A stretch of DNA of 64,000 bases, taken from the sequence record NC_042013.1; one strand, given 5' to 3'. The position numbers were made by a program, and so were the translations under genes. Below the pieces are notes generated by a model that did no database searches, was not told the DNA's origin, and worked only from the letters and a program-made list of their open reading frames with translations. Below are positions 23,565 to 52,545 of this stretch, piece after piece. The first letter of the stretch is position 1. Each line of letters begins with the position of its first letter.

Positions 23565-23766
23565 TAGGCAAAACGTGTACCCCGGCACTGTTAGTATTGC
23601 CGATCTTGCATTTAATACTCCCGGCATCGATTCCGTAGAAACCATTAATGATATTGTAAAAACGTTTCTTGAACATTGGAAGTTTGAACTCCAACGTATC
23701 GACAATTTTGAAAAGAAAATCCAAATTATATTCGTTGATAAAACAAAGCTGGTATTCTATAAATAA
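23545..23766 (+). CDS. Hypothetical protein
   Basis: 73 aa, GTG start with GGAGG RBS, overlaps the upstream gene. Confidence 0.6.
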   Translation: MKFIVNNRQNVYPGTVSIADLAFNTPGIDSVETINDIVKTFLEHWKFELQRIDNFEKKIQIIFVDKTKLVFYK

Positions 23767-23796: not shown

Positions 23797-24279
23797 ATGT
23801 CACGTCATGTAGAAGATGCAGTAAAAGAATATTTTGCAGATAAAATTCCACCATATGTTAAGGCTATGGCATCTGCCGTAAAATATGATCTTATGCATGG
23901 TCCTGCCTATGCAGAAATTCCAGAATCTGGAATTGAAAATTTCACGGTTGATGATTATGCATCATACCCTGAAGATTTGAATGATCCAGAGAAAGCGGTT
24001 CTCGTTTTTGATGATATCTATAATCACTTTACAAAGTGGCTTGATGACAATTTCCCATCAGAAATTTACGTTGATGAAGACGGTTATGTATCTGAAAATG
24101 AGCCAACCGGTTATTATCTTGACACGGACGGTGAAGAAACAAGCGATAGCGAATACGAAGATGAAGACGGCGATATCGTCTCTAACGAATACGTCGAACC
24201 CGGTGAATATTGGGCAGTAGATGCGAGAAATATTGCAAACATTCTTTGGGGTAAGGAAGTAGCAAACCAACTTTATTAA
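23797..24279 (+). CDS. Highly acidic hypothetical protein (DNA-mimic candidate)
   Basis: 160 aa with 40 D/E and 9 K/R by my count; GGAG RBS. Confidence 0.7.
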   Translation: MSRHVEDAVKEYFADKIPPYVKAMASAVKYDLMHGPAYAEIPESGIENFTVDDYASYPEDLNDPEKAVLVFDDIYNHFTKWLDDNFPSEIYVDEDGYVSENEPTGYYLDTDGEETSDSEYEDEDGDIVSNEYVEPGEYWAVDARNIANILWGKEVANQLY

Positions 24280-24291
24280 AATTTTAATAAT

Positions 24292-24346
24292 GAAATCTCA
24301 CAAGGTATAGTGATAATCTAATCACATTATTATCTTGTGAGATTTC
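24292..24346. repeat. 13-bp perfect inverted repeat immediately upstream of the MTase
   Basis: gaaatctcacaag (24292-24304) / cttgtgagatttc (24334-24346), with an inner gtgat/atcac stem. Confidence 0.8.
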
Positions 24347-24351
24347 TATCT

Positions 24352-25329
24352 ATGAACTACATTGGCTCAAAAAACAAACTTACTCCGTGGATTAAAAAGT
24401 CCGTTATCAAGCATTACGGAAAAAGTCTCAAAGAAGCAGTTTTCGCTGACTTCTTCGCAGGAACCGGTCAGGTTGCTCGCGGTTTTAAAACATCAGTAAA
24501 AAAAGTCATAACAAACGATCTCGAGGATTATAGTGTTGCATTGAATGCTCACTATATCGGTAACTCAGATGAGATTGAATGGCCGTCTGTTGATAAGTCA
24601 CCTTATCAGGGAATTATCTCAAATAATTTTTCTGAATTATCAAATCCTCCACGTATGTACTATACGGTAGAGAATGCAATGAAAATTGATGGCATTCGTA
24701 AAAATGCCGGTGATGATCTTGCTTCTGGTAAAATTTCTCAAGAACAATATAATTGGCTTATTGCATCATTAATAGAAGCAGCCGACAAAGTCGCAAACAC
24801 GTCATCAGTATACGGTGCATTCTTAAAGAACTACAAGAAAACCGCTATCAAACCATTAGACTTCTATGGCGTTCATCATGACGTTACCAATCAGAAAAAC
24901 GAAGTACTCCAAGGTGATGCGAACGCGAATATCAAAAAGGTATCTGGTGATATACTTTATCTTGATCCTCCATATAACCAGCGCCAATACGGGGCTAACT
25001 ACCACGTACTGAATCATATCGTAAACTGGAAAGAATTTCAGTCAGATAGAATCACTGGCCTCACAGAGGATTATAACAAATCTGACTACTGCTACAAAAA
25101 CAAGGCAGCAGATGTTTTTGATGATCTTATCAAGAATTCAGATTTTGAATTTATTTTCGTTAGCTATAACAACGAAGGTATCATTCCTGAAAACACATTC
25201 AAGGATATTTTAACCAAGTACGGTCGATACGAACTTGAAACGCAAGAATACCAACGTCTGAAGGTTAATTCTGCTGATAACCAAAGTCCAACAACAACAG
25301 AATATCTTCATATCTTGGTGAAAAAATGA
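24352..25329 (+). CDS. D12-class N6-adenine DNA methyltransferase
   Basis: MNYIGSK N-terminus, motif I DFFAGTG, motif IV LYLDPPY, SYNNEG. Confidence 0.9.
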   Translation: MNYIGSKNKLTPWIKKSVIKHYGKSLKEAVFADFFAGTGQVARGFKTSVKKVITNDLEDYSVALNAHYIGNSDEIEWPSVDKSPYQGIISNNFSELSNPPRMYYTVENAMKIDGIRKNAGDDLASGKISQEQYNWLIASLIEAADKVANTSSVYGAFLKNYKKTAIKPLDFYGVHHDVTNQKNEVLQGDANANIKKVSGDILYLDPPYNQRQYGANYHVLNHIVNWKEFQSDRITGLTEDYNKSDYCYKNKAADVFDDLIKNSDFEFIFVSYNNEGIIPENTFKDILTKYGRYELETQEYQRLKVNSADNQSPTTTEYLHILVKK

Positions 25330-26438
25330 AAACATTTCTTAACGAAATGCGCTCGTTTATACCGGGCGCTAAACCCAATACCCGTAATGCGACTAGACAC
25401 GTTAGAGCGACCGTTAATGATATTCAAATAGATGAATTCACAAAACGTTTTAGCTTCACATCAGACAAAGATACTACGTGCAGTAACACGTATCTAACCC
25501 ATCGAGTCGTTTTTGACAACGATGTTATCCCGGTGGTTTTGTCTAACAAACAGTTTAAAACATCTAAAGGTTCCATTCTTCAAAAACAGTTGACGCCAAC
25601 CAAGTTGGGGATTTATGGGGAATATACCAACTTAGATTTTTTTGTCAATAGGGTTTCTGAAGGTTTTTCAAACGTAGATATCGATACTGATACAAGAGAC
25701 ATGCTTCTCAACATTCTCAATCACGTGTCATATGGCGAATCTATCAATAAATTTTCGCTCTATAAAGCATCTAAGCGAGCTATCGACAAAGATTACGGTG
25801 AAATTCTTGCTGGCGCACACGTTATTAGGATGAATGGAAACGTAACCTTTGCGGAGGGCGAGGCATCTGCTTTTTACGATTTGACGTCTATAAAAGATAA
25901 AAATTTAATAAAATACAATGTAAAATCAGGTAGCGGTTCAGGTCAATCATTCAAGTCCGTTATCCCAAGTGGATCAGGTCATTGCGTTGATCTTATACAT
26001 ATTTTACAAGAAAAATTAGTTGGACGAGAAAAGCTACATAAGTATGTCAAACGTGCGAAAGATGAAGATTCACCAATTTATGACATCATGAAAAATTTAC
26101 AGATACAAGAAACAAAAGATCAATTCATTTCAATGATGAATACCATTTCGAAAAAAACTAATGACGAATGCGGGGTGCCTAAAAATTTCGACATATATAA
26201 CGCAGAAGATGCATATCTATTCGCCGGGTGTACACTAATTTCTCATCACTATCCAATCGATCTTGTAACCGATTCTTTGAAAAACAATGACATTAGAATT
26301 CTACATATTCGTTCAGGTAAAGATAATATCTATATACAAGAGCCACATGACATAAAATACAAAATGCACTATTGGGGTAACTATGCCCACCTATATAATA
26401 ATTTTCCCGGCTTCAAAGGTTTGTATTATGATAAATAG
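25326..26438 (+). CDS. Putative PD-(D/E)XK (restriction-like) endonuclease
   Basis: Coupled to the MTase by an ATGA overlap; KDYGEILAG...FYDL...YNVKSG spacing fits an E...D...(N)xK active site. Confidence 0.5.
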   Translation: MKTFLNEMRSFIPGAKPNTRNATRHVRATVNDIQIDEFTKRFSFTSDKDTTCSNTYLTHRVVFDNDVIPVVLSNKQFKTSKGSILQKQLTPTKLGIYGEYTNLDFFVNRVSEGFSNVDIDTDTRDMLLNILNHVSYGESINKFSLYKASKRAIDKDYGEILAGAHVIRMNGNVTFAEGEASAFYDLTSIKDKNLIKYNVKSGSGSGQSFKSVIPSGSGHCVDLIHILQEKLVGREKLHKYVKRAKDEDSPIYDIMKNLQIQETKDQFISMMNTISKKTNDECGVPKNFDIYNAEDAYLFAGCTLISHHYPIDLVTDSLKNNDIRILHIRSGKDNIYIQEPHDIKYKMHYWGNYAHLYNNFPGFKGLYYDK

Positions 26439-26514
26439 AGGTATGGATGACTGCCAATCGTTCTACAAGGTATATTTTTTTCAAATGATTTAAATATAAT
26501 TTGTTCTGTTTAAG

Positions 26515-26541
26515 AAAACCACCCTTCGGGGTGGTTTTTTT
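26515..26541 (+). terminator. Rho-independent terminator with cUUCGg loop
   Basis: aaaaccacc-cttcgg-ggtgg-ttttttt. Confidence 0.85.
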
Positions 26542-26692
26542 GTGTCTAGATAAATAGAAATATAATGATCGTATCAGTAAAATTTGATACAATCTTTAAG
26601 AGTGATTGTGTGGCAACAATCGTGAAGCTCTATTTTCTAAAACAGAACGAATTAATAATATTTTAAATCAACTCGGGTAATTAAACCCTGTA

Positions 26693-28996
26693 ATGAAAAA
26701 AATTAAAATGACAAAAATCTATTACGTCGACGGCCACGCCGGTTCAGGTAAAACACTTCAAACAAGCCATTGGGTTGTTGAGCAAGCATGCAAATTCAAT
26801 AAGAAAATTGTCATCGCGACTCCAACCACACTTCTTCAGTATCAATGGGCTGAAAATATCAACAATCTTCTTATCGATATTCCATCAAAGCCAACTGTTT
26901 TGGTAATCAATTCAGATACCTCTGATACGTCTGCTCGCGGACAGCTAACGAATGCATACAAAGATGGTAGCGCAAATATCATCATCGTGACACAGCAAAA
27001 TCTCATCAATACCGGCATCGTAAAAGGTAGCAATAAGTATCACCTTATTATGGACGAACTTCCAACAATTGAAGGTATCGATATTGTTACCGCGTCTTCA
27101 ACAGAATCAAAAGAACTTATTAAGAGTTCTGTTTCAATTTTAGATACAAAAACCCCATCTTACAAGTTGATCACTTGCGAAAACAAATCATCACTTCGTA
27201 AATTCGTTGATCAAAAAGGTGATGCACATCGCAATGATTCTGCTGTAGATGCATTCAAAAAGATCATCGATAACGATATTGACGTCTTTATCAAATCTTC
27301 TGATTGGAATTCTTTTTATAATAATGAATTAGAACAACTGAATTTCCATCATATCGTAAAGCCAAGCCGCTTTACCCATTTCAAGTCCGTTACATTTATG
27401 GGCGCAAACTTCAAGCATTCTATGCTTTACAATGTTTGGGAACGAGTTTACTCATGCGAATTTACCAAGAGTAACATTGCAAATGTTCGTGAAATTGTTG
27501 AAGAAGAAACCGGAAGACGTGCTACTATTCATTTTTTGATGGACGAACATTTTTCAAAATCAAAAAGAAATATCGTTACTCCAGAAGTATCAACAACTAT
27601 TTTTAACGAGCTTGTTAATGGAAAAGACCATATCTGGCTTGCAAATAATGACGTAAAGGATTCTCAATATACCATCAAGAACGGTAAGAGACTCCCTATC
27701 ATTTCACACGGTATCAACTCTTGGCGCGATCATACTACAGTTGTACATCTTGCTGCTCTAAATGACAAACCCTTTCATATCGCATTCCTAATCGATTATG
27801 TAGGATTTTCTTCCGAAGAAATCAAAAAAGCAAAAATGTCCGAAATCATTTATCAGGGCGTAATGCGTTGCAATCTTCGTGTTAGAAAAAGTGATAAAAA
27901 AGTTGATATCTATGTCATGGATAAGCAAACTGCTCTTGATCTCAAATCATATCTCCCCGGCGCTTCTGTAAAAAAGATCGCACAAGGAATGGTAAACGAT
28001 ACGTATAAGAGAGAAAAACTATCATCGCGTGATACTACAGAACGTCATCGTTTTAAGAATGAATTCATCGAACATCCCGGTATTTTCAATGAACCTGATA
28101 TCAAGGTTTCATTTGAAGAGACTATTTCCTCCACTTGCGTCGGTGAATTCGATTCCCCTACGTTTAGACATTTTCGCGATTTCTTTAAAGCGGAATCATC
28201 AAATGTCGTATCTGGAAAAGAACATAATAATCTTTTTTCTCCCGCTATTTTTGAATCTGAATATACAATTCGGTGTGGTGACGAAGTGGTACATATCGGT
28301 GGAAAGAATAAACAGATTAAGGGTCTTTCACAATTCAAGCAAGCATCAGTTCTTGTCTTTGACATCGATAAAACAACAACGTCTCCTGAGGAAGTTTCAG
28401 CGAGAATTCCTTTCAAGCATTTCATTTATTCCTCATATTCAAACAAAAAAGACGGATTATACAGCTACCGTGTAGTTGTTGGTCTAAAGTATGCAGTTGA
28501 TGAAAAGAATTACAAGCTTCTCTATGATTTTATCTACGAGAAGTTTAAAGATATTGCCTCTGCCGATGCTTCTAAAAGAACACCAGTTTCTTTCTTCTAT
28601 TTCCCATCTCAGTCTCATTTTGGTGAAAATGTATGGATCGATATGGTTGATTGCCGTAAGCATCGCCTCTTAAACCCCATCGACATTATCCCTGCACTTG
28701 AAGAAATGTCAAATGTAGAAAAGCATGACGAAATTGAAAATGTTTATGTTTCAACCGATATGTCTGCTATTCAGAATAATCTTGTTGATCGTAAGCAATT
28801 CCTCATCAATCAATGGCGTGGAATGGGTCGTGGTCGTCATAAGGGATTTTTCAACTTAGGACTTGGCCTATCATATATTGGTGTTAATCCGGTTGAATTG
28901 CATTCAATTCTTACAACCGAATCTAAAACAAATGGACGTGATAGATCAAGGCAAATCCCATCTATTATGTCATCTATCTACAGATATTCAATCTGA
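26693..28996 (+). CDS. SF2-like helicase fused to a primase-like C-terminal region (origin-binding/replication protein)
   Basis: Walker A GHAGSGKT, IVIATPT, Walker B LIMDELP, FMGAN, YQGVMRCNLR; C-terminal VLVFDID...YSSYS...YRVVVGL and GRHKGFF (AEP/PriCT-like); start may be 26708. Confidence 0.65.
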   Translation: MKKIKMTKIYYVDGHAGSGKTLQTSHWVVEQACKFNKKIVIATPTTLLQYQWAENINNLLIDIPSKPTVLVINSDTSDTSARGQLTNAYKDGSANIIIVTQQNLINTGIVKGSNKYHLIMDELPTIEGIDIVTASSTESKELIKSSVSILDTKTPSYKLITCENKSSLRKFVDQKGDAHRNDSAVDAFKKIIDNDIDVFIKSSDWNSFYNNELEQLNFHHIVKPSRFTHFKSVTFMGANFKHSMLYNVWERVYSCEFTKSNIANVREIVEEETGRRATIHFLMDEHFSKSKRNIVTPEVSTTIFNELVNGKDHIWLANNDVKDSQYTIKNGKRLPIISHGINSWRDHTTVVHLAALNDKPFHIAFLIDYVGFSSEEIKKAKMSEIIYQGVMRCNLRVRKSDKKVDIYVMDKQTALDLKSYLPGASVKKIAQGMVNDTYKREKLSSRDTTERHRFKNEFIEHPGIFNEPDIKVSFEETISSTCVGEFDSPTFRHFRDFFKAESSNVVSGKEHNNLFSPAIFESEYTIRCGDEVVHIGGKNKQIKGLSQFKQASVLVFDIDKTTTSPEEVSARIPFKHFIYSSYSNKKDGLYSYRVVVGLKYAVDEKNYKLLYDFIYEKFKDIASADASKRTPVSFFYFPSQSHFGENVWIDMVDCRKHRLLNPIDIIPALEEMSNVEKHDEIENVYVSTDMSAIQNNLVDRKQFLINQWRGMGRGRHKGFFNLGLGLSYIGVNPVELHSILTTESKTNGRDRSRQIPSIMSSIYRYSI

Positions 28997-40584: not shown

Positions 40585-41217
40585 ATGAGTACTAAACTTA
40601 CCGAACATTCTACTTTTGATTCGGCAAAGATTGTCGTTGAAGGCGGTGGTCTTAATGCTGATGGTAAACCAAAAGACCTTTATCTAAAAGGAACATTCAT
40701 TCAGGGTGGATCACGTAACCAAAACGGACGTATCTATTCTGTAGAAGAAATCAGAAAAGCTGTTGACGATATCAACAACGTCTTGAAAACAAATTCAGTT
40801 CTTGGTGAATTAGACCATCCACCAGAATTAACCATCAACCTCGACCGTGTTTCCCATATGATTACAGAAATGTATATGGATGGTCCTAATGGTATTGGTA
40901 AACTCAAAATTATTCCAACGCCAATGGGTAATATTGCAAAGGTTCTTATCGAATCTGGTTTCAAAATGGGTGTTAGCTCACGCGGTTCCGGTGATGTTGA
41001 TCATAACGGACACGTTCACGGTTTTATGATCAAGACCGTTGACCTTGTATCTGACCCTTCTTGCGTTGCGTCTGTTCCTGTTCCAATTTATGAATCCTTC
41101 TTGAATCATGGTCAAAGAGGTGCTATTCGTTATGATATGGCGCAAAATGCTAATAACGATTCCGCAGCACAAAGATACCTTCGCGAAGAATTACTTCGCT
41201 TCATTGATAGCCTATAA
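40585..41217 (+). CDS. gp21: Prohead core protease, T4 gp21-like
   Basis: NQNGRIY, LGELDHP, NLDRVSH, GVSSRGSG, DLVSDPS. Confidence 0.95.
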   Translation: MSTKLTEHSTFDSAKIVVEGGGLNADGKPKDLYLKGTFIQGGSRNQNGRIYSVEEIRKAVDDINNVLKTNSVLGELDHPPELTINLDRVSHMITEMYMDGPNGIGKLKIIPTPMGNIAKVLIESGFKMGVSSRGSGDVDHNGHVHGFMIKTVDLVSDPSCVASVPVPIYESFLNHGQRGAIRYDMAQNANNDSAAQRYLREELLRFIDSL

Positions 41218-41222
41218 GGATT

Positions 41223-41981
41223 ATGATTATGGATTTTAGACAGATTAGAGCACTTCTTGAAGGCGCGGGTAAAACATTTTATAATGATTATCGTGAAGGT
41301 TACATTCAATTTGAATCACCTGTAGATGAAAAAGTATTCACCGATTATCTGGTATCGTTATCAGATGGTATTGATGAAACCGGTGAATATGTGGTTCTTG
41401 ATAAAAAAGTACCGGCTGGAACTCTCGAGGCGTTTCTAAACGCAGATATTCCAGATGATGAATTTGAAGAAGTTCTTATGAAAATGGATGAACGTCTTAT
41501 CCCTTATTATGTTGATCTCACCCACGTCAAGAAAGACGGTGAAAGTGTAATTGACGATAACGATGACGTTGTTATTACATTTGAATTGCCAGATGGTAAT
41601 TTCTATGCATTTGAATCTATTGAAGATCAAACATACCTTGAGGAACTATTTCAACAGTTGGGAATGGATTACAAAATTGGTGCAATCAATAATGATGAAA
41701 GCATTCAGTATGTTCCAGCAGATTCACTTTTATCGTTTGACATCACCACTGATGACGACCGTGCAGAGTACGATTGGGAACAAGTTTCAAAATTGATTGG
41801 AAAATATCTAAATAAAGTTGTTGTTCGTGAACATCTTAGTAAGAAAGATGCTACCGCTGGTGAATATATCCGAGATTTCGAAAAGTCTAAAAACTGGCGT
41901 TTTAAAGGCGACGATATTGAAAAGCGTAAACAACGCGCTGTTGCTGCTTATATGCAGTCACGTGGAAGGGATGACAACTAA
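41223..41981 (+). CDS. Prohead core/internal head protein
   Basis: C-terminal DATAGEYIRDFEKSK..RFKG....KRKQRAVAAY motif recalled from T4-like head proteins; acidic. Confidence 0.6.
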   Translation: MIMDFRQIRALLEGAGKTFYNDYREGYIQFESPVDEKVFTDYLVSLSDGIDETGEYVVLDKKVPAGTLEAFLNADIPDDEFEEVLMKMDERLIPYYVDLTHVKKDGESVIDDNDDVVITFELPDGNFYAFESIEDQTYLEELFQQLGMDYKIGAINNDESIQYVPADSLLSFDITTDDDRAEYDWEQVSKLIGKYLNKVVVREHLSKKDATAGEYIRDFEKSKNWRFKGDDIEKRKQRAVAAYMQSRGRDDN

Positions 41982-42637
41982 TGTCTATTCGCAAGTTCTT
42001 AAACATTATTAATGAGTCTTATGTAATTGAAGCTGTTGGTCATTATGCTCTTCGTTACGGCGACAAGTATGTTCAGTTTGAATCTAAATCTGATTTTGAT
42101 TATGCTTACAATATCTTGAATTTATATAAGGCACGCGTTTCTAAAGTAGATGACGTTCTACCTAAACAAGTACCAGCAAATACATTTTCAAAGTTTTATA
42201 AATTGAACCTTGACGAATTGCACGATGAAACTGATGATGAATGGTATGACATTCTTCATGATCTTACAATGAATGTTTTGAAAAAGATTAAGCCATATGA
42301 AATGGCTAAATCTGAATTTGAAAAAGTTTATCCTATTTTCAAATATAGTGAAACAGATGGTTTACATTCAGAGGCAAAAGATGATCTTTATTTTGCATTT
42401 GAAAACGACGCTGATAAAGAGTTGTTTGATAAAATCATAGCTCACGCACACGGTTCAGTATCTGAGCCAACAGGAGACGAATCGTCAACGGTTGTTCCAA
42501 ACGGTTTCTTTGATAATTACAGCGATTTAGTAAATGAATTTGAACAATACGTAGAAAAAGATGAAGACATTGCTACAGAAATTGCAATTGATCTATACGT
42601 AAAAATGTTTAATAAACTTAAGAAATACGCAAGTTAA
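41981..42637 (+). CDS. Head-cluster protein, paralogue of 41223-41981
   Basis: MSIRKFLNIINE start; two repeats of F-E-[SN]-x-x-D...VP like the upstream gene. Confidence 0.6.
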   Translation: MSIRKFLNIINESYVIEAVGHYALRYGDKYVQFESKSDFDYAYNILNLYKARVSKVDDVLPKQVPANTFSKFYKLNLDELHDETDDEWYDILHDLTMNVLKKIKPYEMAKSEFEKVYPIFKYSETDGLHSEAKDDLYFAFENDADKELFDKIIAHAHGSVSEPTGDESSTVVPNGFFDNYSDLVNEFEQYVEKDEDIATEIAIDLYVKMFNKLKKYAS

Positions 42638-43029
42638 GTCCAAAAAACCCTCTTGAATTTATAATGGTCAATCGCCTTCTGGCAACCCACACAAGGTTTG
42701 CTGTTGGCGATTTTTCCATTTCTACCGATCCGCATAACATACAAATCACACGATTCAAGAAACTCCTCTCCGTGTATATTAATAGCACGCTTAATAGCAT
42801 CGATTTCAGCATGACGAAAAATCTTATGCTCATTGGTTTGAAAATTGAGCATAAACGTGTCTGTTTTCATTTGACAACTACCAATAGATACTATCTTTCG
42901 TTTATATACAACAGCAGATATATGTCGACTATTGCTAACATAATCAACATCCTGACAAGCATCAAAAAGTTTATCAAAAATTCTTTTAGACGATTTAGAC
43001 TTTACAATCGTATTCCACATTAATCCCAT
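42634..43029 (-). CDS. Zinc-dependent cytidine/dCMP deaminase-family protein
   Basis: HAEIDAI and SKPCVGC zinc-binding motifs. Confidence 0.85.
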   Translation of the reverse strand: MGLMWNTIVKSKSSKRIFDKLFDACQDVDYVSNSRHISAVVYKRKIVSIGSCQMKTDTFMLNFQTNEHKIFRHAEIDAIKRAINIHGEEFLESCDLYVMRIGRNGKIANSKPCVGCQKAIDHYKFKRVFWT

Positions 43030-43577
43030 AGTCCATCGTAATATTTCGAAAACAACCGCATACCATTTTCAATTCTTGCCATCTTAGCTCGAGAATCTTT
43101 AGTATTATCAAAAAGATCATCTTCCAATTTGCATTCAAACGCATATATCATTTCATCAATAACATATTCCCAACGTGAATGAACTAATTCATCGCTGAGG
43201 TTGGTATCCCGAAGAAAAAGAGGTACGTCTGATGGATCAATAGATGGAGAACCATTTTTGGTATTTTTAAGTTCTTTTAAACAAGGAATGATTATCAATG
43301 CAAGAGTTTCATACAAATTCCAAACATCGTAATTGTCAACCTTGATTTTGACTTTTCTCTCGCGCTTGTTCAAAAGATCAAGAATTTTCTGCAACGGAGA
43401 TTCAAACAAATAATCAGAAATTTTATTAATGGTGTCAGTGGTCATCCCGAATGATTTAAAATTCAACAAAAATCCATAAAAGGAATAATGTCTAGGCCAT
43501 TTCGATATACGAATTTTCATTTCTTCAACTCCAGAATAAAGGAGGATATTACCCCCTTTATTCGTAAAAAACAACAA
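43020..43577 (-). CDS. Conserved phage hypothetical protein
   Basis: VKVDNYDVWNLYETLALIIIPCLKELK..KNGSP...RWEYVIDEMIYAF...ENGMRLF.KYY.GLWD motif recalled from phages. Confidence 0.7.
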   Translation of the reverse strand: MLFFTNKGGNILLYSGVEEMKIRISKWPRHYSFYGFLLNFKSFGMTTDTINKISDYLFESPLQKILDLLNKRERKVKIKVDNYDVWNLYETLALIIIPCLKELKNTKNGSPSIDPSDVPLFLRDTNLSDELVHSRWEYVIDEMIYAFECKLEDDLFDNTKDSRAKMARIENGMRLFSKYYDGLWD

Positions 43578-44396
43578 TTAAATGGCTTTTGCGTAATTAA
43601 CAATAGTCTGGTCTGCATTGTTATAAACAGAATGCTTGGAAATTCGCCCCTTAAGAACAAAAACGTCACCTTCGTTCTTTTTAAACTTTGGAGACATTAC
43701 AACAATCTGCTTATTTTCTTCATTCGCCATGATGGTAACGTGTACCGTTTCCATACCACCAACGAAATGATTTTCGCGAATAAACGAGGTTGCCTTGATA
43801 ACTCGTACCCGCGTTTCAATGTTACCCTTTTCCACTCCAACAAAACCGGGTTCGAAAGAGAAATTGACACGATCAAAAAGTTCGGGAGTATTGATAATAT
43901 GATGAGCAACTGCCTTCATGATGTTCTCTTCATCAAAGGTATCGACATTCTCAACAACCCATTTCAAATAAGACGTCTTGATATCGGAAAATACTTCACC
44001 GCGATAATAACCAACCGGCATAATACCAGAATGTATCATTGCAATACGTTCGTCATACTGCTGACGGCATACGCGCTTATATTCAGCTTCGCGTTCCGCA
44101 ATTTGACGGGCGCGTTCTTCACGCTCATCTTTCTTCATACGGGTAATGGTTCGCATCTCAGCCTCGAGAGTTTCCTTGGAAGGCTGCTTGCACATAATAC
44201 CCCACTTAAGAGAAATCATCAGAGCCTTGGCAATAACATCGTCAATGTCCTGACCAAGATTAAAATGATGAAACGAACGGATTTCTTTATGTGCACAGTT
44301 GCCATAATGGGAAACGTGTTCGTAGGTTTCACGAAGGGTGTACATTGCGCCTGTTTCACCAATACCAATGTAAAGATTGGGAACAAAATTCGTCAT
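43578..44396 (-). CDS. Early protein with a probable C-terminal OB fold
   Basis: First gene after a cassette; C-terminal GDVFVLKGRISKHSVYNNADQTIV OB-fold-like segment. Confidence 0.65.
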   Translation of the reverse strand: MTNFVPNLYIGIGETGAMYTLRETYEHVSHYGNCAHKEIRSFHHFNLGQDIDDVIAKALMISLKWGIMCKQPSKETLEAEMRTITRMKKDEREERARQIAEREAEYKRVCRQQYDERIAMIHSGIMPVGYYRGEVFSDIKTSYLKWVVENVDTFDEENIMKAVAHHIINTPELFDRVNFSFEPGFVGVEKGNIETRVRVIKATSFIRENHFVGGMETVHVTIMANEENKQIVVMSPKFKKNEGDVFVLKGRISKHSVYNNADQTIVNYAKAI

Positions 44397-44400
44397 AACA

Positions 44401-44454
44401 ATCTCCTTCAACGTTTCGATGGGATAGTTATAACTCTTCTATAAAATAAGTCAA
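44401..44454 (-). promoter_or_regulatory. Early promoter-leader cassette
   Basis: TTGACT-N16-TATAAC-tatccc-ATCGAAAC-gttg-AAGGAG. Confidence 0.85.
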
Positions 44455-44458
44455 TAAC

Positions 44459-44767
44459 TTATTTGTCAATTATATATAAAAGATGTTCAGGAATTAATGA
44501 CTTGTAATCATAGTATTCTTTGGTAGTGATAATCAATTCATGGTATTTTCCCATATATCGAAAATCTACAAATTTTGTGGCATCTACTATAAAAGGAAAA
44601 ACATCAGTTACATCAAAGCATACCTGATAATGGTTACCATGCTCAATTAACCAAAAATATTTTTTGATAACAGCCATTTCACGAATCTCGTCGGATACGT
44701 CAATATCCTTAAACAATTGGTCGAAATCACCGTGATCGTTAGCGGACCATAAATCTATAAAATACAT
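44459..44767 (-). CDS. Hypothetical protein
   Basis: 102 aa ORF. Confidence 0.55.
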   Translation of the reverse strand: MYFIDLWSANDHGDFDQLFKDIDVSDEIREMAVIKKYFWLIEHGNHYQVCFDVTDVFPFIVDATKFVDFRYMGKYHELIITTKEYYDYKSLIPEHLLYIIDK

Positions 44768-44833
44768 TCATATATAACCTTGAATAACACTCCACATAAT
44801 GGTATATTATCCCGTTTTCAACGGAGAAGCAAT

Positions 44834-45073
44834 ATGACTGTAAATATAATTATGGGAAAGAAAAAAGAAACACGTCAGAAAAAAATTGCTGCTTTGGCAA
44901 AAAGATATAATGCATCTCTTGAAGGTGAAGTGTTAACTGTGCCTTATAGTGATGGTAATTTTGACGAGAACATAATCGTTAACCTTGAAAAAATTCCGGC
45001 AAAATTTTGGAAAGAATTGGTTGTAAAATCAATCGTTAAACATTTCTACAATAAAGGATTGCAAGATGCATAA
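44834..45073 (+). CDS. Hypothetical protein
   Basis: GGAG RBS before ATG 44834; ends at a terminator. Confidence 0.65.
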   Translation: MTVNIIMGKKKETRQKKIAALAKRYNASLEGEVLTVPYSDGNFDENIIVNLEKIPAKFWKELVVKSIVKHFYNKGLQDA

Positions 45074-45076
45074 ATT

Positions 45077-45101
45077 AAAAAGCCCGCTTTTGGCGGGCTT
45101 T
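45077..45101. terminator. Bidirectional terminator
   Basis: aaaaagcccgc-tttt-ggcgggcttt. Confidence 0.75.
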
Positions 45102-45107
45102 GATCTT

Positions 45108-45347
45108 TTAAGAATTCTGCAACAGGTGGTTTACGAGTTGACGCATTGCAGGGAATGAATTTACCGAATGCATATCGTTTTCATCCGAGTTTTTAGCAGA
45201 TTCGAAAATGACCTTGTAGGTAACCGTAGCCATCAAAACGGAGGTAATGATCTTGACAATAACCGTATTACCAGCAGCCGTTTTACCGGAAAATGCGATG
45301 TTTTCAAATACAAGACCATTGAAGTCGTCGCGGGAAATCTCTTTCAT
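45108..45347 (-). CDS. Small early hypothetical protein
   Basis: 79 aa, directly behind a cassette. Confidence 0.75.
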   Translation of the reverse strand: MKEISRDDFNGLVFENIAFSGKTAAGNTVIVKIITSVLMATVTYKVIFESAKNSDENDMHSVNSFPAMRQLVNHLLQNS

Positions 45348-45353
45348 AAAAAT

Positions 45354-45407
45354 ACTCCTTAATTCGTTTCGATGATTAAGTTATATACTATTTGGAAAAA
45401 TTGTCAA
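45354..45407 (-). promoter_or_regulatory. Early promoter-leader cassette
   Basis: TTGACA-N16-TATAAC-ttaatc-ATCGAAAC-gaatt-AAGGAG. Confidence 0.85.
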
Positions 45408-45425
45408 TAGATTTTTTTATTTAAG

Positions 45426-45509
45426 TGGTACGCCGCCCCGGACTCGAACCGGGATGCTTTCGCGGAACCTTTTGAGGATTCTGTGTCTAACCAATTTCAC
45501 CAGCGGCGC
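45426..45509 (-). tRNA. tRNA-Leu(CAA)
   Basis: Acceptor GCGCCGC/GCGGCGT, anticodon arm GAATC-CTCAAAA-GGTTC, long variable arm, T arm CCCGG-TTCGAGT-CCGGG, encoded CCA. Confidence 0.92.
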
Positions 45510-45520
45510 ATATAGAAATT

Positions 45521-45596
45521 TGGTAGGCGGGGTCGGGATCGAACCGACGATAAACCTGTTATGAGCAGGTGGCCTTAACCACTTGGCTACCCGCCT
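45521..45596 (-). tRNA. tRNA with CAT anticodon (elongator Met or Ile2)
   Basis: Acceptor AGGCGGG/CCCGCCT, anticodon arm ACCTG-CTCATAA-CAGGT, T arm GTCGG-TTCGATC-CCGAC, encoded CCA. Confidence 0.9.
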
Positions 45597-45649
45597 GAAT
45601 TTCTATGATCTAACTATATGATATTTACTGCTGGTTCGCAAGTTTTATT

Positions 45650-45958
45650 TTACGTTAAGGATGATATTTTTTCTATTATCTCTTGCATTGTATCGGCGCG
45701 ATGTATACCGGTATCATTTTCAAAATACGAAAAATCTCCGATGTATATTTTACTAATATCATTTGGATTTGGTAAACTCATTGGAAGTATTTGTGAAAAC
45801 GACTCCATTGTTGTTGCGAAAAATGTGTATGATTCACCATTAAAGATATCATATAATATATCTATGGTATAACCGATTTCATTTTCGGTATCTAACAAAT
45901 ATATTACGTTGTTTGTGTTCCTTATAAAATCTAAGTATTGTTTACGTATTGTGATCAT
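45650..45958 (-). CDS. Hypothetical protein
   Basis: 102 aa ORF overlapping the upstream gene. Confidence 0.55.
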   Translation of the reverse strand: MITIRKQYLDFIRNTNNVIYLLDTENEIGYTIDILYDIFNGESYTFFATTMESFSQILPMSLPNPNDISKIYIGDFSYFENDTGIHRADTMQEIIEKISSLT

Positions 45959-46307
45959 TGTTAATCTCTAGTATTAGTTCATCTATACTTGTTGTGTTTT
46001 TCCTAAAAAGTTCCAATTCATATTCTGACATATCTTTAGATATATTGAAACCAACTCTCTCGTGATTTTTGTAAAAAACGAATGGAAATACATCTGAAAT
46101 ATTATGGATGTTTGCAACATAGGTTGCTCTTAAAAGTAACAGGTTTGACCCGTATTTTTTAGATATGATTATTCCCCAACCTTCTTTGCCGTTGAACGTG
46201 TCGTGTTCCACATATTCACCAAATTTTGTTAATGATGCAAAACTTAAATATGATGACACTTTTGAAAAGAATACGGTGTAAGTTTCTAAAAAATTTTTCA
46301 ATATCAT
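45942..46307 (-). CDS. Hypothetical protein
   Basis: 121 aa with AAGGAG RBS. Confidence 0.6.
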   Translation of the reverse strand: MILKNFLETYTVFFSKVSSYLSFASLTKFGEYVEHDTFNGKEGWGIIISKKYGSNLLLLRATYVANIHNISDVFPFVFYKNHERVGFNISKDMSEYELELFRKNTTSIDELILEINNDHNT

Positions 46308-46453
46308 CTCCTTATAAATATATCAAACGATACCTTAAAAATGGTCAAAAATAAAGAAAAAAAGCATAAACTACGGCCTTTTAAAAGTGATTTGTTAAAT
46401 AGTTTTAGAAACAAAAAAGTTTCTAATCCGAGGACATTTAAAGGATAAACAAT

Positions 46454-47329
46454 ATGAAGAGTGAACTACATAAAGCATTAACGCTGCTCATCAATGAAGA
46501 TCGCGAAGCCGCTGTAAGCGTTCTTCGTGATGCTATTCTTGAAGCTGCAAAAGATATCAAGCAGAAGCTTGATGAAGAAGACGACCTTGAAATCGTTGCA
46601 CCTGAAGATGATCTTGACGACATCGAAGTTGACGAAGTTGAAGGCGCGGAATTTGACGGCGACGAAGTCGAAGTTGATGACGAAGTTGAAGTTGAAGAAG
46701 AACCTGAAATTGAAGACGTTGTAGATCGTATCGAAGATGTTGAAGCACATATTGCTGAACTTCAGGCTGAAATGGACCGCCTCCGTGGTGAGGAAGTTCT
46801 TGATGACGTTGACGGCGAAGAAGAAATCGAAGTTGAAGATGAAATCGTTTCTGAAGAAGATTTCACAAGCGAATTCGAAACTCTTGATGCTGATTTTGAT
46901 GACTTTGACATGGACGCTGAAATTGATTTTGATATCGATCTCGAAGAAGGCAAGTCATTCCGTCATTCAGAAGATGACGATGAAGAAATTGATTTCACCG
47001 CGAAGCGTAAAGCTTCTAAGGAAGATCGTGCAGCACGCCGTCGCGAATATGACCACGAACGTGAAGACGAACTCGTTGAGTCTGTTGGCGAAAAGGTAGC
47101 AATTCCAGCTAATAAGGAAGGACGCCTTGCAGGAACAAATAAAACTGTTGCTGTTAAGAAAAATTCCACATTGCCTAAGCAGGAACCAGTAATCAAGACT
47201 GAAGCTGAGCCAATCAAGACTGTTGGTGGTAAGACTAAGAACCCAACCGCTCCTAAGAAGCCAAAGCTTGACGTTGAAATTAAGAACGTTAAGAACGCTC
47301 CTCACGTTAAGGTTATTGGTAAAAAGTAA
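46454..47329 (+). CDS. Acidic prohead core protein
   Basis: 291 aa, D/E-rich centre and Lys/Pro-rich tail; TAAATA upstream; lies before gp22 and gp23. Confidence 0.7.
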   Translation: MKSELHKALTLLINEDREAAVSVLRDAILEAAKDIKQKLDEEDDLEIVAPEDDLDDIEVDEVEGAEFDGDEVEVDDEVEVEEEPEIEDVVDRIEDVEAHIAELQAEMDRLRGEEVLDDVDGEEEIEVEDEIVSEEDFTSEFETLDADFDDFDMDAEIDFDIDLEEGKSFRHSEDDDEEIDFTAKRKASKEDRAARRREYDHEREDELVESVGEKVAIPANKEGRLAGTNKTVAVKKNSTLPKQEPVIKTEAEPIKTVGGKTKNPTAPKKPKLDVEIKNVKNAPHVKVIGKK

Positions 47330-47336
47330 TAAAATG

Positions 47337-47362
47337 TTTTGGGAGGCATTGTCCTCCCAAAA
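47337..47362. terminator. Hairpin, possible terminator
   Basis: ttttgggagg-cattgt-cctcccaaaa. Confidence 0.5.
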
Positions 47363-47405
47363 TTTCGATTTTTTCGTTAAAAATTAAACTAAATTTTCGA
47401 AAAAG

Positions 47406-47413
47406 TATAAATA
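47406..47413 (+). promoter_or_regulatory. T4-type late promoter TATAAATA
   Basis: Exact match upstream of the scaffold and MCP genes. Confidence 0.8.
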
Positions 47414-47474
47414 TTTTTGAAAGCAATTATTAACCAAATACTTAATGATTGCGGTAATCAGGGAGTACCCACAT

Positions 47475-48719
47475 ATGGAAACTGGATTTGAAAAGCTGCT
47501 CGAAGGTGCCGTTCTTAGTGAAGATACTAAGGCTGCATTGTCGACCGCTTGGAAAAGAAAGTTGGATGAGGCTCGTTCTGAAATTCGTGATGAGGAAGCA
47601 TATAAACTTCGTGAAGAATTTGCAAGTCGCTTTGAAAGCGATAAGTCAGATTTGGTCGAAGCAATGAATCTTATGATCACGGATTCTCTTTCTGAAACCT
47701 TCAAGGAAATTGAAGATGAAAAGAAAGAACTCGTTTCAGAACGTAAAGCACTTGCCGACAAACTTTCTAAAGCAGACGCAGAAAAAGAAAAGTCTATTTC
47801 CGAACACGCTAAAGTAATGGAGCAATTCATTCTTAATGTTCTATCTAAGGAAATTAGAGAACTTAATGAAAGCGTTAAGGAAATCGGTGCAGAAAAAGAC
47901 AAGTTCATCTCTGAATCGAAAGAAGCAGAAGCAAAACGTGAAGAAGAAAGCGAAAAGAAACTTGAAGTTCTTGAAAGCTTTGTTCGTAAGCAACTTGCAA
48001 AAGAACTTAATGAATTCCAACAGGACAAGCGTCAGCTTGTTGAAACACGCGTTAAACTCATCACTGAGGGTCGCGCAAAGATGGCTGAAACACGTAAGGC
48101 ATTTATCGAAAGAGCAAGCCGTATCGTTGAATCAACTATCGAAGAAAGACTTACATCTGAACTTACACAGTTGCGTAGCGACCTTAAGGAAGCAAAGCAG
48201 TTGCACTTTGGCCGTAAGCTTTTCGAAGCATTCCAAGAAGAGTTTCTTTCAAGCCACCTTTCCGAAGGTACTAAGGTTAAGAAGCTTATGACTGAACTTG
48301 ACGTTGCAAAGCGCACAATCTCAGAATCTGCAACAAGAATTGCTGAATCTAAAAAGGTTGTTGAAAATATGCAGCGCCGCATCAATCTCGCTGAAGACAA
48401 AATTCAGCGCGAAAAAACACTCAACACCTTGCTTGCACCGCTTAACCGCGAAAATCGCAAGATTATGAGTGAATTGCTTGAAAGTGTTCAAACACCAGCA
48501 CTCAAAGCAGCTTTTGATCGCAACTTGCCCCATCTAATGGAATCAGGTGCATCATCACAGGGTCGCCGTATGTTATCCGAGACCTCTGCAAAAACCAAGC
48601 CTGTAGAAGTTACAGGTAACAGAACTACACGACTCGTTGAATCAACCCAACAAAAAGACGTCGATACATTTGAACTTGAAATCAATGATCTAAAGCGTCT
48701 TGCAGGGATTAAAAAGTAA
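47475..48719 (+). CDS. gp22: Prohead core scaffold protein, T4 gp22-like
   Basis: Coiled-coil E/K-rich; LSEDTK..LSTAW..KL..AR...R..EA..LREEFA.RFE.DK..LVEA; GGAG RBS before ATG 47475; precedes the MCP. Confidence 0.85.
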   Translation: METGFEKLLEGAVLSEDTKAALSTAWKRKLDEARSEIRDEEAYKLREEFASRFESDKSDLVEAMNLMITDSLSETFKEIEDEKKELVSERKALADKLSKADAEKEKSISEHAKVMEQFILNVLSKEIRELNESVKEIGAEKDKFISESKEAEAKREEESEKKLEVLESFVRKQLAKELNEFQQDKRQLVETRVKLITEGRAKMAETRKAFIERASRIVESTIEERLTSELTQLRSDLKEAKQLHFGRKLFEAFQEEFLSSHLSEGTKVKKLMTELDVAKRTISESATRIAESKKVVENMQRRINLAEDKIQREKTLNTLLAPLNRENRKIMSELLESVQTPALKAAFDRNLPHLMESGASSQGRRMLSETSAKTKPVEVTGNRTTRLVESTQQKDVDTFELEINDLKRLAGIKK

Positions 48720-48732
48720 GGAATTTTAAACT

Positions 48733-49962
48733 ATGAGTAAACTTTTTGAAAGCAATTGGGATACGGCAAAAGCTGCTCTCTTGGAAGGTAAGGACTTGAC
48801 CCGCAATTTTGACGGTTCTTACAACGACAACAAGAAGCGCGTTATGAACGCTGTCCTTGAAAACGTCCGTAAAGACATTGCAGCACGTTCTGCACCTCTT
48901 ATGGAAAATGCAACCGCAGGCGCAACCTCATCTGGTAACGTAGCTGTCCTTAATCAGGTCATCCTACCTATCATCCGCCGTGTTATGCCTACAATCATCG
49001 CTAACGAAATCGTTGGTGTTCAGCCTATTTCTGGCCCCGTTGCACAGATCTCCACCCTTCGCGTTCGTTATGCGGACTCAGTTGGTGGCGTTAATGGTGT
49101 AACTGCAGGTGCAGAAGCGCTTTCACCTTTCGATATCGCACGTTACTATTCTGGTAACGAAAACCCTGCTAACCCCGGCGCAGCAACAACTTCAGTTCTT
49201 GAAGGTCGCCCCGGTAACCGTCTTAACGTTGAACTCGTTCGTCAGACCGTTGAAGCAAAGACTCGCCGTCTTTCCAGCCGTTGGACGTTCGAAGCAGCGC
49301 AGGACATGCAGTCACAGTATGGCGTTGACCTCGAAGCAGAAGTAATGAACGCTGTTGCTACCGAAATCACAACCGAAATCGACCAAGAAATTCTTGGCGT
49401 TCTTCGTGCGCTTCCCGGTACACCAGCAGCAGTTTACGATCAGGCTAACGTTTCCGGTACGGCTACGTTCGTTGGTGACGAATTCGCGGCACTCGCAATC
49501 CTCATCAACCGTCAGTCAAACCTCATCGCGTCACGCACGAAGCGTGGTCCTGCGAATTGGGCAGTTGTTTCTAACACCGCGCTTACAATTCTTCAGGCTG
49601 CTACAACTTCAGCGTTCGCACGTACGACTGTTGGCACGTTCGAAGCACCTACCAACGTTAAGTACGCTGGTATGCTTAACAACAGCCTTCGCGTTTATGT
49701 TGACACATACGCATCCGACTCTACACCAGTTCTCGTTGGTTATAAGGGTCAGGGCGAAACGGACGCAGCGGCATACTTCTGCCCTTACGTTCCATTGACA
49801 TCAACCGGCGTTGTTATTGACCCACAGACCCTCGAGCCACTCTTGGGCTTCATGTCACGTAACGCTATTCTTACGTTCACCAACTCTGCATCATCCTTCG
49901 GTAACTCTGCGGACTACCTCGGCTTGATCGGTATTGACGCATCAACATTGAAGTTCCTCTAA
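48733..49962 (+). CDS. gp23: Major capsid protein, T4 gp23-like
   Basis: LPIIRRVMPTIIANEIVGVQPISGP, VEAKTRRLSSRWTFEAAQD, EIDQEIL, AYFCPYVPL; strongly biased codons. Confidence 0.97.
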   Translation: MSKLFESNWDTAKAALLEGKDLTRNFDGSYNDNKKRVMNAVLENVRKDIAARSAPLMENATAGATSSGNVAVLNQVILPIIRRVMPTIIANEIVGVQPISGPVAQISTLRVRYADSVGGVNGVTAGAEALSPFDIARYYSGNENPANPGAATTSVLEGRPGNRLNVELVRQTVEAKTRRLSSRWTFEAAQDMQSQYGVDLEAEVMNAVATEITTEIDQEILGVLRALPGTPAAVYDQANVSGTATFVGDEFAALAILINRQSNLIASRTKRGPANWAVVSNTALTILQAATTSAFARTTVGTFEAPTNVKYAGMLNNSLRVYVDTYASDSTPVLVGYKGQGETDAAAYFCPYVPLTSTGVVIDPQTLEPLLGFMSRNAILTFTNSASSFGNSADYLGLIGIDASTLKFL

Positions 49963-51762: not shown

Positions 51763-52545
51763 CTAGAATGAAAACAAATCGTTACCGATGCTTGGATTAT
51801 TGTCTTTGACTCGTTCTACTGCTTTTTCATAATACTCATCATTTTGTTCCATGCAAATCCATTGACGTTTTGTATTTTCGGCAGCAATAGCTGTTGTGCC
51901 AGAACCAGCGGTATTATCCAGAACCATTTCGCCGGGATTGGTATATGTTTTGATAATATATTCAAAAAGGGCGACGGGTTTTTGTGTTGGATGAAAACCG
52001 GTTTCGCGACTTATTTCAATTCGTTGTTTTGGAAAATTGGTGAATTCTTGACGATGCTCTTTACCGGCAGTTCTGAGTGAACCTTTTCCGTTAGAGATAT
52101 GCTCACCTTTGAGTGTAGCACCACCTTGGGAGGCGCTATTTTTACGAACGACACTTGCCATTTGAACGCCTTGAGGATTGTATGTGGGTTGCTTCTTATA
52201 GAAAACACAAACGTCCTCAAGGTGTCGCAATGGTTGTTTAGAGGCATTTGCGAAACCAGTAACGCTAATCTTGTCCCATACCCACGTGTATTTGAAGTGC
52301 TTTATTTGGCTTGAAATAAGGGCTGTGGTGAACGGTTGTGCGCTGGTTAGTACGATAGCACCGTTTGCTTTAATAACGCGCCAGTATTGTTCCCAAAGCG
52401 GTTCAAAGGGTATTATGCTATCCCACGCGCAAGATGTTGTACCATAAGGAAGGTCGCAGAGGATAAGATCAACGGTTCCTTGTGGAATATCTTTCATTAA
52501 TTCAAGGCAATCACCTTTTAAGAACGTACCATTACCTAATTTCAT
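51763..52545 (-). CDS. N4-cytosine/N6-adenine DNA methyltransferase (beta class), orphan
   Basis: GDCLELM, motif IV CDLPY, HPTQKPV, motif I LDNTAGSGTT. Confidence 0.9.
   Translation of the reverse strand: MKLGNGTFLKGDCLELMKDIPQGTVDLILCDLPYGTTSCAWDSIIPFEPLWEQYWRVIKANGAIVLTSAQPFTTALISSQIKHFKYTWVWDKISVTGFANASKQPLRHLEDVCVFYKKQPTYNPQGVQMASVVRKNSASQGGATLKGEHISNGKGSLRTAGKEHRQEFTNFPKQRIEISRETGFHPTQKPVALFEYIIKTYTNPGEMVLDNTAGSGTTAIAAENTKRQWICMEQNDEYYEKAVERVKDNNPSIGNDLFSF

Follow-up and report, generated by a model that had tools for sequence, protein, structure and literature searches.

Agrobacterium phage Atu_ph07 is a jumbo phage of 490 kb (NC_042013.1), and this analysis concerns two adjacent genes, gp189 and gp190, within a 64-kb piece of its genome. 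This piece, the whole stretch of DNA that was analysed, is called the window below, and a window position equals the record position minus 124000. In public sequencing runs, the Atu_ph07 sequence is found in DNA metagenomes only. The two genes and the elements that surround them are as follows:

24352..25329, plus strand: gp189, 325 amino acids (aa), D12 N6-adenine DNA methyltransferase, predicted target CATG
25326..26438, plus strand: gp190, 370 aa, predicted Type II restriction endonuclease of an undescribed PD-(D/E)XK family
25800..25925, plus strand: putative catalytic codons of gp190, with E159 at 25800-25802, D185 at 25878-25880 and N198-V-K200 at 25917-25925
24273..24290, strand not assigned: perfect A+T palindrome of 18 bp, overlapping the gp188 stop codon
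24292..24346, plus strand: large inverted repeat with 16-nt arms (24292-24307 and 24331-24346) and an inner 5-bp stem
26512..26541, plus strand: intrinsic terminator that closes the gp189-gp190 unit

The start codon of gp190 overlaps the stop codon of gp189 in the sequence ATGA, and via this overlap the two genes are translationally coupled in an operon of a methyltransferase (M) followed by a restriction endonuclease (R). A first-pass annotation of this DNA had described a D12 adenine methyltransferase coupled to a 370-aa open reading frame (ORF), the pair being closed by a terminator; the ATGA overlap, a Pfam PF02086 match of gp189 and the terminator at 26512-26541 bear out this description. 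Both genes are under strong purifying selection. Specifically, against an 86%-identical relative the ratio of nonsynonymous to synonymous divergence (dN/dS) is 0.02 for gp189 and 0.06 for gp190, at synonymous divergences (dS) of 0.8-1.2.

The gp189 protein matches PF02086 (MethyltransfD12) with an E-value of 7.6e-41 and the PADLOC Type II methyltransferase model PDLC03257 (MTase_II) with an E-value of 1.5e-106. Motif I, FAGTG, lies at about 24454-24468 and motif IV, DPPY, at 24964-24975. As judged from these sequence matches, gp189 is an alpha-class (D12) N6-adenine DNA methyltransferase. Its start is placed at the ATG at 24352 because the MNYIGSK beginning of its homologues fits there; a GTG at 24337 was considered as the start and rejected, since the homologues all begin MNYIGSK. 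Over its full length (325 aa), gp189 is 49% identical to the methylase of the Helicobacter pylori cysE-iceA locus, and it is 48% identical to a Campylobacter concisus methylase whose neighbour is an ICEA/NlaIII-family nuclease. The block LASLIE.ADKVANT.SVYGAFLK is kept between gp189 and related methylases, and in the middle, target-recognition part gp189 agrees well with the enzymes of H. pylori and C. concisus. The methylase of the H. pylori iceA locus, hpyIM, is CATG-specific (PMC13340068).

Scanning reference genomes with the methylase alignment gives 80 loci at 46-50% identity. Six of them are in H. pylori, where the gene comes after cysE and a short gap, i.e. in the iceA position; the enzyme at these loci is the CATG-specific hpyIM, which is partnered by iceA1, a homologue of NlaIII. 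In 12 of the methylase loci a Pfam ICEA nuclease (E 4e-121) stands upstream, in 43 an unrelated ORF of ~216 aa that belongs to no family, and at one locus (L105) the gene partnering the methylase is a member of the gp190 family. In hhalign comparisons, no relatedness is detectable between the ICEA cluster, the ~216-aa family of the 43 loci and the gp190 family. Several unrelated nucleases beside one methylase clade are usual for isospecific systems. Taken together, these comparisons assign gp189 to the M.HpyI/M.NlaIII clade as an ordinary member, and its target is most likely the adenine of CATG on phage DNA. As a separate observation, the ~216-aa ORF (L041:9242-9925 and 42 other loci) directly precedes CATG-type methylases in Flavobacteriia and in bacteria of other groups, has a conserved FDHKT and gives no Pfam or PHROG match; it is a candidate for a third, unrelated CATG restriction-enzyme family.

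Searched as a single sequence, gp190 matches nothing in Pfam, PHROGs, NCBIfam, PADLOC or the sequences of the PDB. Among 5.8 billion proteins, a word-indexed search picks out six relatives only, and an exhaustive profile search returns 156 homologues, which are distant. From these a family alignment of 61 full-length diverse members was used, with a mean identity of ~20%. Pfam scans of each of the 61 sequences, a search of PDB sequences with the 61-sequence profile and a search of PHROGs with gp190 homologues all give nothing, and 185,579 reference genomes scanned with the nuclease alignment give no match; L105 was found by the separate scan with the methyltransferase alignment. The sole invariant columns of the family alignment are E159, D185 and K200 (61/61 sequences). 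At position 198, 33 of the 61 have S, 20 have N and 8 have A, and none has D or E. The E...D...NVK arrangement that the first-pass annotation had pointed out in gp190 is thus present as E159, D185 and N198-V-K200, and it goes beyond chance because these three residues alone are invariant in 61 homologues.

An AlphaFold2 model of gp190, built with the family alignment, has a mean predicted local distance difference test score (pLDDT) of 93.2 and a predicted template modelling score (pTM) of 0.83. In the model, an N-terminal alpha/beta domain (approximately residues 1-84) is followed by a helical linker and by a nuclease core that runs from approximately residue 150 to the end. The core is arranged in the order helix, three strands, helix, strand, which is the canonical alpha-beta-beta-beta-alpha-beta order of PD-(D/E)XK nucleases. 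As judged from this secondary-structure order, E159 is located in helix 150-170, D185 directly before strand 186-190, and N198 and K200 in strand 193-201. Across four structure libraries, all matches to the C-terminal half of gp190 are PD-(D/E)XK nucleases. The best are I-Ssp6803I (Z 5.6) and HhaI (Z 5.4), and the other weak fold matches include EcoRV, Hjc, MspI, NhoI, BsuRI, HaeIII, HpaII, SmaI, SfsA, Mrr, RecB and HamA; a Foldseek search of the model against the PDB gives no match below E 0.45. The N-terminal domain weakly resembles nucleotidyltransferase folds, without their catalytic motif, and may be a DNA-binding or dimerisation domain. With an invariant triad and the predicted core topology, the earlier proposal that the second gene is of PD-(D/E)XK type is strengthened, and gp190 is predicted to be a PD-(D/E)XK endonuclease of an undescribed family with the catalytic set E159, D185 and N198-x-K200. 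As a side observation, in four viral contigs (L010-L013) a distant gp190-family gene is split into adjacent ORFs of ~240 and ~225 aa, which reflects either disruption or a truly bipartite form.

In place of the acidic residue of the classical (D/E)xK, gp190 has N and the family as a whole S, N or A, so the catalytic chemistry of gp190 is inferred by analogy. The same replacement would fit a gp190 that has lost catalysis and persists as a relic, or that serves as a DNA-binding partner, and the fact that no family member carries D or E at position 198 speaks for it. Such a loss of function is extremely unlikely in view of the invariance of E159, D185 and K200 across ~60 very divergent sequences and of the strong purifying selection on the gene. 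Additionally, S-x-K combined with an acidic residue at a shifted position occurs in active enzymes, e.g. Cfr10I and NgoMIV.

The genomic context was examined for every reachable close homologue of gp190, and this close subfamily comprises eleven lineages. A gp189-type D12 methylase is adjacent to the nuclease gene in nine of the eleven, in three gene orders. Specifically, M precedes R in the Atu_ph07 clade (L039, L040), L007, L008, L033/L034, L035 and L121/L122; the two genes are divergent in L036/L037; and R precedes M in L038 and L105. No third gene is common to the M-R loci, the bacterial contigs, which share no other neighbour, included. In L007 and L008, the methylases are 59-60% identical to gp189 and the nucleases 28-31% identical to gp190. 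A conserved M with a divergent R is the usual asymmetry in restriction-modification pairs. Because the linkage outlasts gene rearrangement, and because a conserved M accompanies a fast-evolving R, gp189-gp190 reads as a Type II restriction-modification pair. The first-pass annotation had proposed a restriction-modification-like pair and had named usual occurrence of the nuclease gene without the methyltransferase as a finding that would contradict it; in the close subfamily this is not so, the methylase adjoining in nine lineages. Taken together, these findings make it likely that gp189-gp190 is a two-gene Type II restriction-modification module of a lytic jumbo phage.

The sequence at which such a module would act was approached by comparing site counts with a maximal-order Markov expectation, the result being given as the ratio of observed to expected counts (O/E). 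For CATG, genomes with and without the two genes compare as follows:

Atu_ph07 window, nuclease and methylase: 77 observed, 234 expected, O/E 0.33, z -10
L039 and L040, nuclease and methylase: O/E 0.40
Sinorhizobium phage Phosso, syntenic 50 kb, neither gene: 156 observed, 197 expected, O/E 0.79
P0004 contig, 36.8 kb (36,801 bp), nuclease only: 0 observed, 101.8 expected, O/E 0.00
P0003 contig, 4.6 kb, nuclease only: 0 observed, 10.3 expected, O/E 0.00

P0004 and P0003 are two close phage homologues of gp190, ~40% identical to it, which occur as lone genes in phage-like contigs; their contig loci are L128 and L129 (Logan SRR32944848 contig 24890, record 28399-65199) for P0004 and L006 for P0003. 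In each, the nuclease gene is a single plus-strand gene amid small minus-strand ORFs, and the 36.8 kb of the P0004 contig contain no methylase-like ORF. A maximum-likelihood tree groups gp190 with P0003/P0004 in a phage clade (100/100 support) that lies among methylase-linked members. Phosso, which is without both genes, is the nearest cultured relative of Atu_ph07 (73% major-capsid identity). CATG is therefore near normal where there is no nuclease, three-fold depleted where nuclease and methylase occur together, and zero where the nuclease is alone. Motif depletion in the phage genome, for which the first-pass annotation had suggested looking, is in this way found for CATG, which shows the strongest depletion among all sixteen 4-bp palindromes of the Atu_ph07 window. 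CATG is also the only 4-mer wholly missing from the solitary-nuclease contigs; the next-lowest in the P0004 contig is GATC, with an O/E of 0.47. Among the 80 methylase loci, the lowest median O/E is that of CATG (0.48), with GGCC (0.49) and CTAG (0.55) close behind.

Two side observations belong to these counts. Around hpyIM in H. pylori (L073, L085, L089, L093, L104, L111), CATG is not depleted (O/E about 1.3), and in many other genomes with this methylase clade its O/E is 0.05-0.2. Most iceA1 genes are reported to be inactivated, which the undepleted CATG at hpyIM fits. CTCGAG is over-represented in the window (13 against 4.2 expected).

Several observations weigh against the reading of gp189-gp190 as a restriction-modification pair acting at CATG. 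CATG specificity is suggested by the 49% methylase identity and by site statistics, and an identity of only 49% to M.HpyI would also allow a true restriction-modification pair with a recognition site other than CATG. GATC (O/E 0.65) and CTAG (O/E 0.32) are likewise depleted in the window, and in the pooled bacterial loci with both M and R (41 kb), CATG is only mildly low (O/E 0.74), AATT and GTAC being more depleted. The comparison with Phosso is confounded because its host differs, and CATG avoidance could be driven by host restriction enzymes and not by the phage's own nuclease. A different site is nevertheless unlikely. The H. pylori and C. concisus enzymes share a well-conserved target-recognition part with gp189, no 4-mer except CATG is fully missing from the solitary-nuclease contigs or as depleted among the palindromes of Atu_ph07, and two further adenine methylases, gp220 and gp235, could explain the depletion of GATC. 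CATG is, on this balance, reasonably probable as the site of gp189 and gp190. The two additional genes themselves, gp220 (51763-52545, minus strand) and gp235 (60352-61161, minus strand), are annotated as adenine-specific methyltransferases and have no obvious nuclease partner.

The remaining counter-evidence concerns the nuclease. Its structural matches are weak (best Z 5.6; Foldseek against the PDB E >= 0.45), its (D/E)xK acidic residue is N, the two phage homologues P0003 and P0004 have no methyltransferase nearby, and in a distant subfamily of ~460 aa, found in ~25 phage contigs (L010-L032, L123-L127), there is no methylase within 5-10 kb and CATG is normal. The last-named subfamily would suit a gp190 that is a recombination, repair or homing-type nuclease, next to which gp189 stands by chance as an anti-restriction methylase. 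The inclusion of the homing endonuclease I-Ssp6803I and of Holliday-junction resolvases among the fold matches is in line with this, as is the isolation of P0003 and P0004 as lone genes on the strand opposite to their neighbours. We consider such a nuclease quite unlikely, given that the same methylase clade is adjacent in nine lineages and three orders and that gp189 and gp190 are translationally coupled. Additionally, there is not a single CATG around the solitary homologues, and this indicates a sequence-specific cutter.

The first-pass annotation had gone further and read the beginning of gp190 as a capsid-targeting-like peptide. In this proposal, gp190 would be loaded into the prohead as in T4, trimmed by the gp21 homologue after L5-N6-E7, and injected to cut host or competitor DNA. 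The start of gp190 does read MKTFLNE, combining M-K-T-F with [LI]xE as in the T4 sequences which that annotation quoted, and the gp21 homologue that it reported in the window is gp204 (40585-41217). The location of gp190 is suggestive as well, since it lies inside a cluster of virion genes (coding sequences 170-215) next to gp188, a virion protein with the T4 late-promoter consensus TATAAATA 32 nt upstream. Moreover, chloroviruses package their restriction enzymes, as stated in PMC7248222, citing Agarkova 2006. In the virion of Atu_ph07, mass spectrometry identified 131 proteins (PMC6102473, Supplementary Table S5). Among them are gp183, gp185 and gp188 from just upstream of the pair and also single-peptide non-structural proteins, e.g. 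a RecA-like protein and ribonucleotide reductase (PMC6102473). In contrast, gp189, gp190 and gp191 are absent from this virion proteome, the list going from gp188 to gp196 (PMC6102473), with the limit that proteomics can miss low-copy proteins.

The N-terminus itself also argues against capsid targeting. It differs across gp190 homologues, which begin MKPALLTL and MKQFISL (the closest phage homologues), MQTILKDF or MYDLQNNYKKFLLE, and P0003 and P0004 have no E within their first 10 residues. An amphipathic first helix followed by FP.AK is common to gp190 and to bacterial restriction-modification homologues, which have no capsid; in the model, residues 2-9 form a helix of pLDDT 97 that is part of the folded N-terminal domain. 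Of 58 annotated window genes, 12 start with MK (21%), two start with MKT and 16 (28%) have [LI]xE in the first 15 residues. Because MK starts and [LI]xE are this common, the likeness of gp190 to the T4 peptides is little informative. Late expression together with the head genes is not indicated for gp190 either, since it lacks its own late-promoter motif and a hairpin lies between gp188 and the pair, although transcription may read through from gp188. An injected, capsid-targeted gp190 is accordingly very unlikely, and its capsid-targeting-like start looks like a coincidence. Thus, of the earlier interpretation, the restriction-modification pair with a PD-(D/E)XK-type nuclease is supported, and the capsid peptide and the head-packaged, injected nuclease are not. 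As an observation on the head module, all six of its proteins gp204-206 and gp213-215 (40585-49962) have [LI]xE in the first 15 residues (e.g. ...ALLE/GAG, ...KLLE/GAV, LFE/S); these motifs, in appearance unlike the gp190 N-terminus, are candidate prohead-protease cleavage sites.

The pair is delimited by a conserved palindromic element on its upstream side and by a terminator on its downstream side. Upstream, the A+T palindrome at 24273-24290, identical in L040 and L039, forms the first hairpin of the fold. The inverted repeat at 24292-24346, a strong hairpin that separates gp188 from gp189, is among the best in the 64-kb window, with a folding energy of -28.3 kcal/mol and a z-score of -6.4. 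Inside it are two sigma-70-like -10 boxes, TATAGT (24306-24311) and GATAAT (24312-24317). The 72-nt intergenic region (24280-24351) has one difference from L039, the 86% relative, against a dS of 0.6-1.2 in the flanking genes. The idea that the hairpin upstream of gp189 is a known RNA family was rejected, as Rfam gives no match for it at threshold, and no controller (C) protein gene is present at the gp189 locus. We propose the 24292-24346 element as a candidate regulatory element, which may act as an operator, end the late gp188 transcript, or do both. Downstream, the terminator at 26512-26541 consists of a stem rich in G+C that is capped by a UUCG loop and followed by a run of T (-22.6 kcal/mol, z -5.0), and it is kept in L039 and L040 although the sequence just upstream of it diverges.

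The first-pass annotation saw no late promoter directly upstream of the pair, and this holds: TATAAATA is not found directly upstream of gp189 or gp190, the nearest copy being at 23758-23765, before the start of gp188. Copies at 23758, 40545 and 47406 precede gp188, gp204 (the prohead protease homologue) and gp214 (scaffold-like) at distances of 32-69 nt from the start codons (32-33 nt for gp188 and gp204, 62 nt for gp214), and there is another at 46313. The motif is not enriched in the window overall (5 found, 6 expected), but its copies are well placed. Because it precedes the starts of gp188, gp204 and gp214, T4-like late promoters are seemingly used by this phage.

Two neighbouring genes complete the locus. 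Directly upstream of gp189 lies gp188 (23797-24279, 160 aa), which is very acidic and was identified as a virion protein with 4 peptides and 26% coverage; its family searches give nothing except a weak match to choline-binding repeats. Downstream lies gp191 (26693-28996, 767 aa), with an N-terminal DEAD-like P-loop (PF00270, E 5.8e-07) and a match to phrog_2467, whose function is not known. A role of gp191 as a third component was considered and rejected; its synteny with the pair is confined to the Atu_ph07 clade, so it probably lies outside the module. Between the terminator and gp191, the stretch 26542-26625 is conserved in relatives and contains AGATAAATAG and an inverted repeat with a 10-bp stem (26567-26594); it probably serves gp191 as a promoter or regulatory region.

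A working scheme for the pair can be put forward, in which we infer the nuclease activity, the CATG cleavage, the targets and the timing of expression of gp189-gp190. gp189 would methylate CATG on replicating phage DNA, and gp190 would most likely cut CATG that is unmethylated. The infected cell, and not the head, would be the source of the nuclease. Because incoming genomes would already carry methylation, gp190 could be made at once without self-harm and act immediately. Host DNA and the DNA of co-infecting phages, unmethylated at CATG, would be cut, and the outcome may be host shut-off, nucleotide supply, competitor exclusion or a mix of these. Long-term selection would have thinned CATG in the phage despite methylation. 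More broadly, we tentatively suggest, at somewhat short of even chances, that the gp190 family is a new family of CATG endonucleases which phages use offensively against host or rival DNA, sparing themselves either by a cognate methylase, as in the Atu_ph07 clade, or by total purging of CATG without a methylase, as in P0003 and P0004.

Restriction-modification systems of phages and giant viruses are already known, few of the phage-borne ones being characterised; what is new here is the nuclease family. If the scheme holds, gp190 would found a new family of CATG restriction enzymes, one that comes with a good structural model and with its catalytic residues already named, and ~150 hypothetical phage and bacterial proteins would gain an annotation. 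Atu_ph07 and its CATG-free sister phages would then form a natural contrast between marking one's own DNA and having no sites at all, and the CATG-free sister phage with a solitary nuclease is the most interesting by-product of the analysis. The injected nuclease with a T4-like targeting peptide is unsupported, and it is removed from the annotation of Atu_ph07.

Among known systems, HpyI/NlaIII (hpyIM and iceA1) is similar to gp189-gp190 in its methyltransferase clade, in its two-gene Type II organisation and in its site, CATG being the predicted one here. Its nuclease, however, is unrelated: the gp190 family and the ICEA cluster align with an hhalign probability of 0.1, and ICEA nucleases are ~230 aa long, whereas gp190 has 370 aa in two domains and is borne by a lytic phage. 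A virus-encoded CATG system is also known from the chlorovirus PBCV-1, whose CviAII consists of M.CviAII (A251R) and R.CviAII (A252R) (PMC7248222). As is predicted for the Atu_ph07 pair, it places a CATG adenine methylase next to a nuclease, in a lytic virus that carries methylation on its own DNA (PMC7248222). Unlike Atu_ph07, PBCV-1 is a virus of eukaryotic algae, and its restriction enzymes are reported to be packaged in virions, whereas gp190 was not found in those of Atu_ph07; R.CviAII is not among the 30 best Swiss-Prot fold matches of the gp190 model.

With PD-(D/E)XK Type II enzymes (HhaI, EcoRV, MspI, HaeIII/BsuRI, and the S-x-K variants Cfr10I and NgoMIV), gp190 shares the predicted core topology, with Glu on helix 1, Asp before strand 2 and x-K on strand 3. 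It differs from them in having no detectable sequence similarity, low structural scores (Z <= 5.6), an extra N-terminal alpha/beta domain (1-84) and large helical insertions. The T4 internal proteins and Alt resemble gp190 in the M-K-T-F start and in [LI]xE within the first 10 residues, but gp190 is not in the virion proteome, and its motif is unconserved and part of a folded helix seen in bacterial proteins. A parallel in inferred logic is with T4 EndoII/denA and EndoIV/denB, where host DNA is destroyed and phage DNA is marked as self. T4 does this with hydroxymethylcytosine and cytosine-specific nucleases, whereas in Atu_ph07 the mark would be site-specific N6-methyladenine or, where relatives carry the nuclease alone, the lack of any such site.

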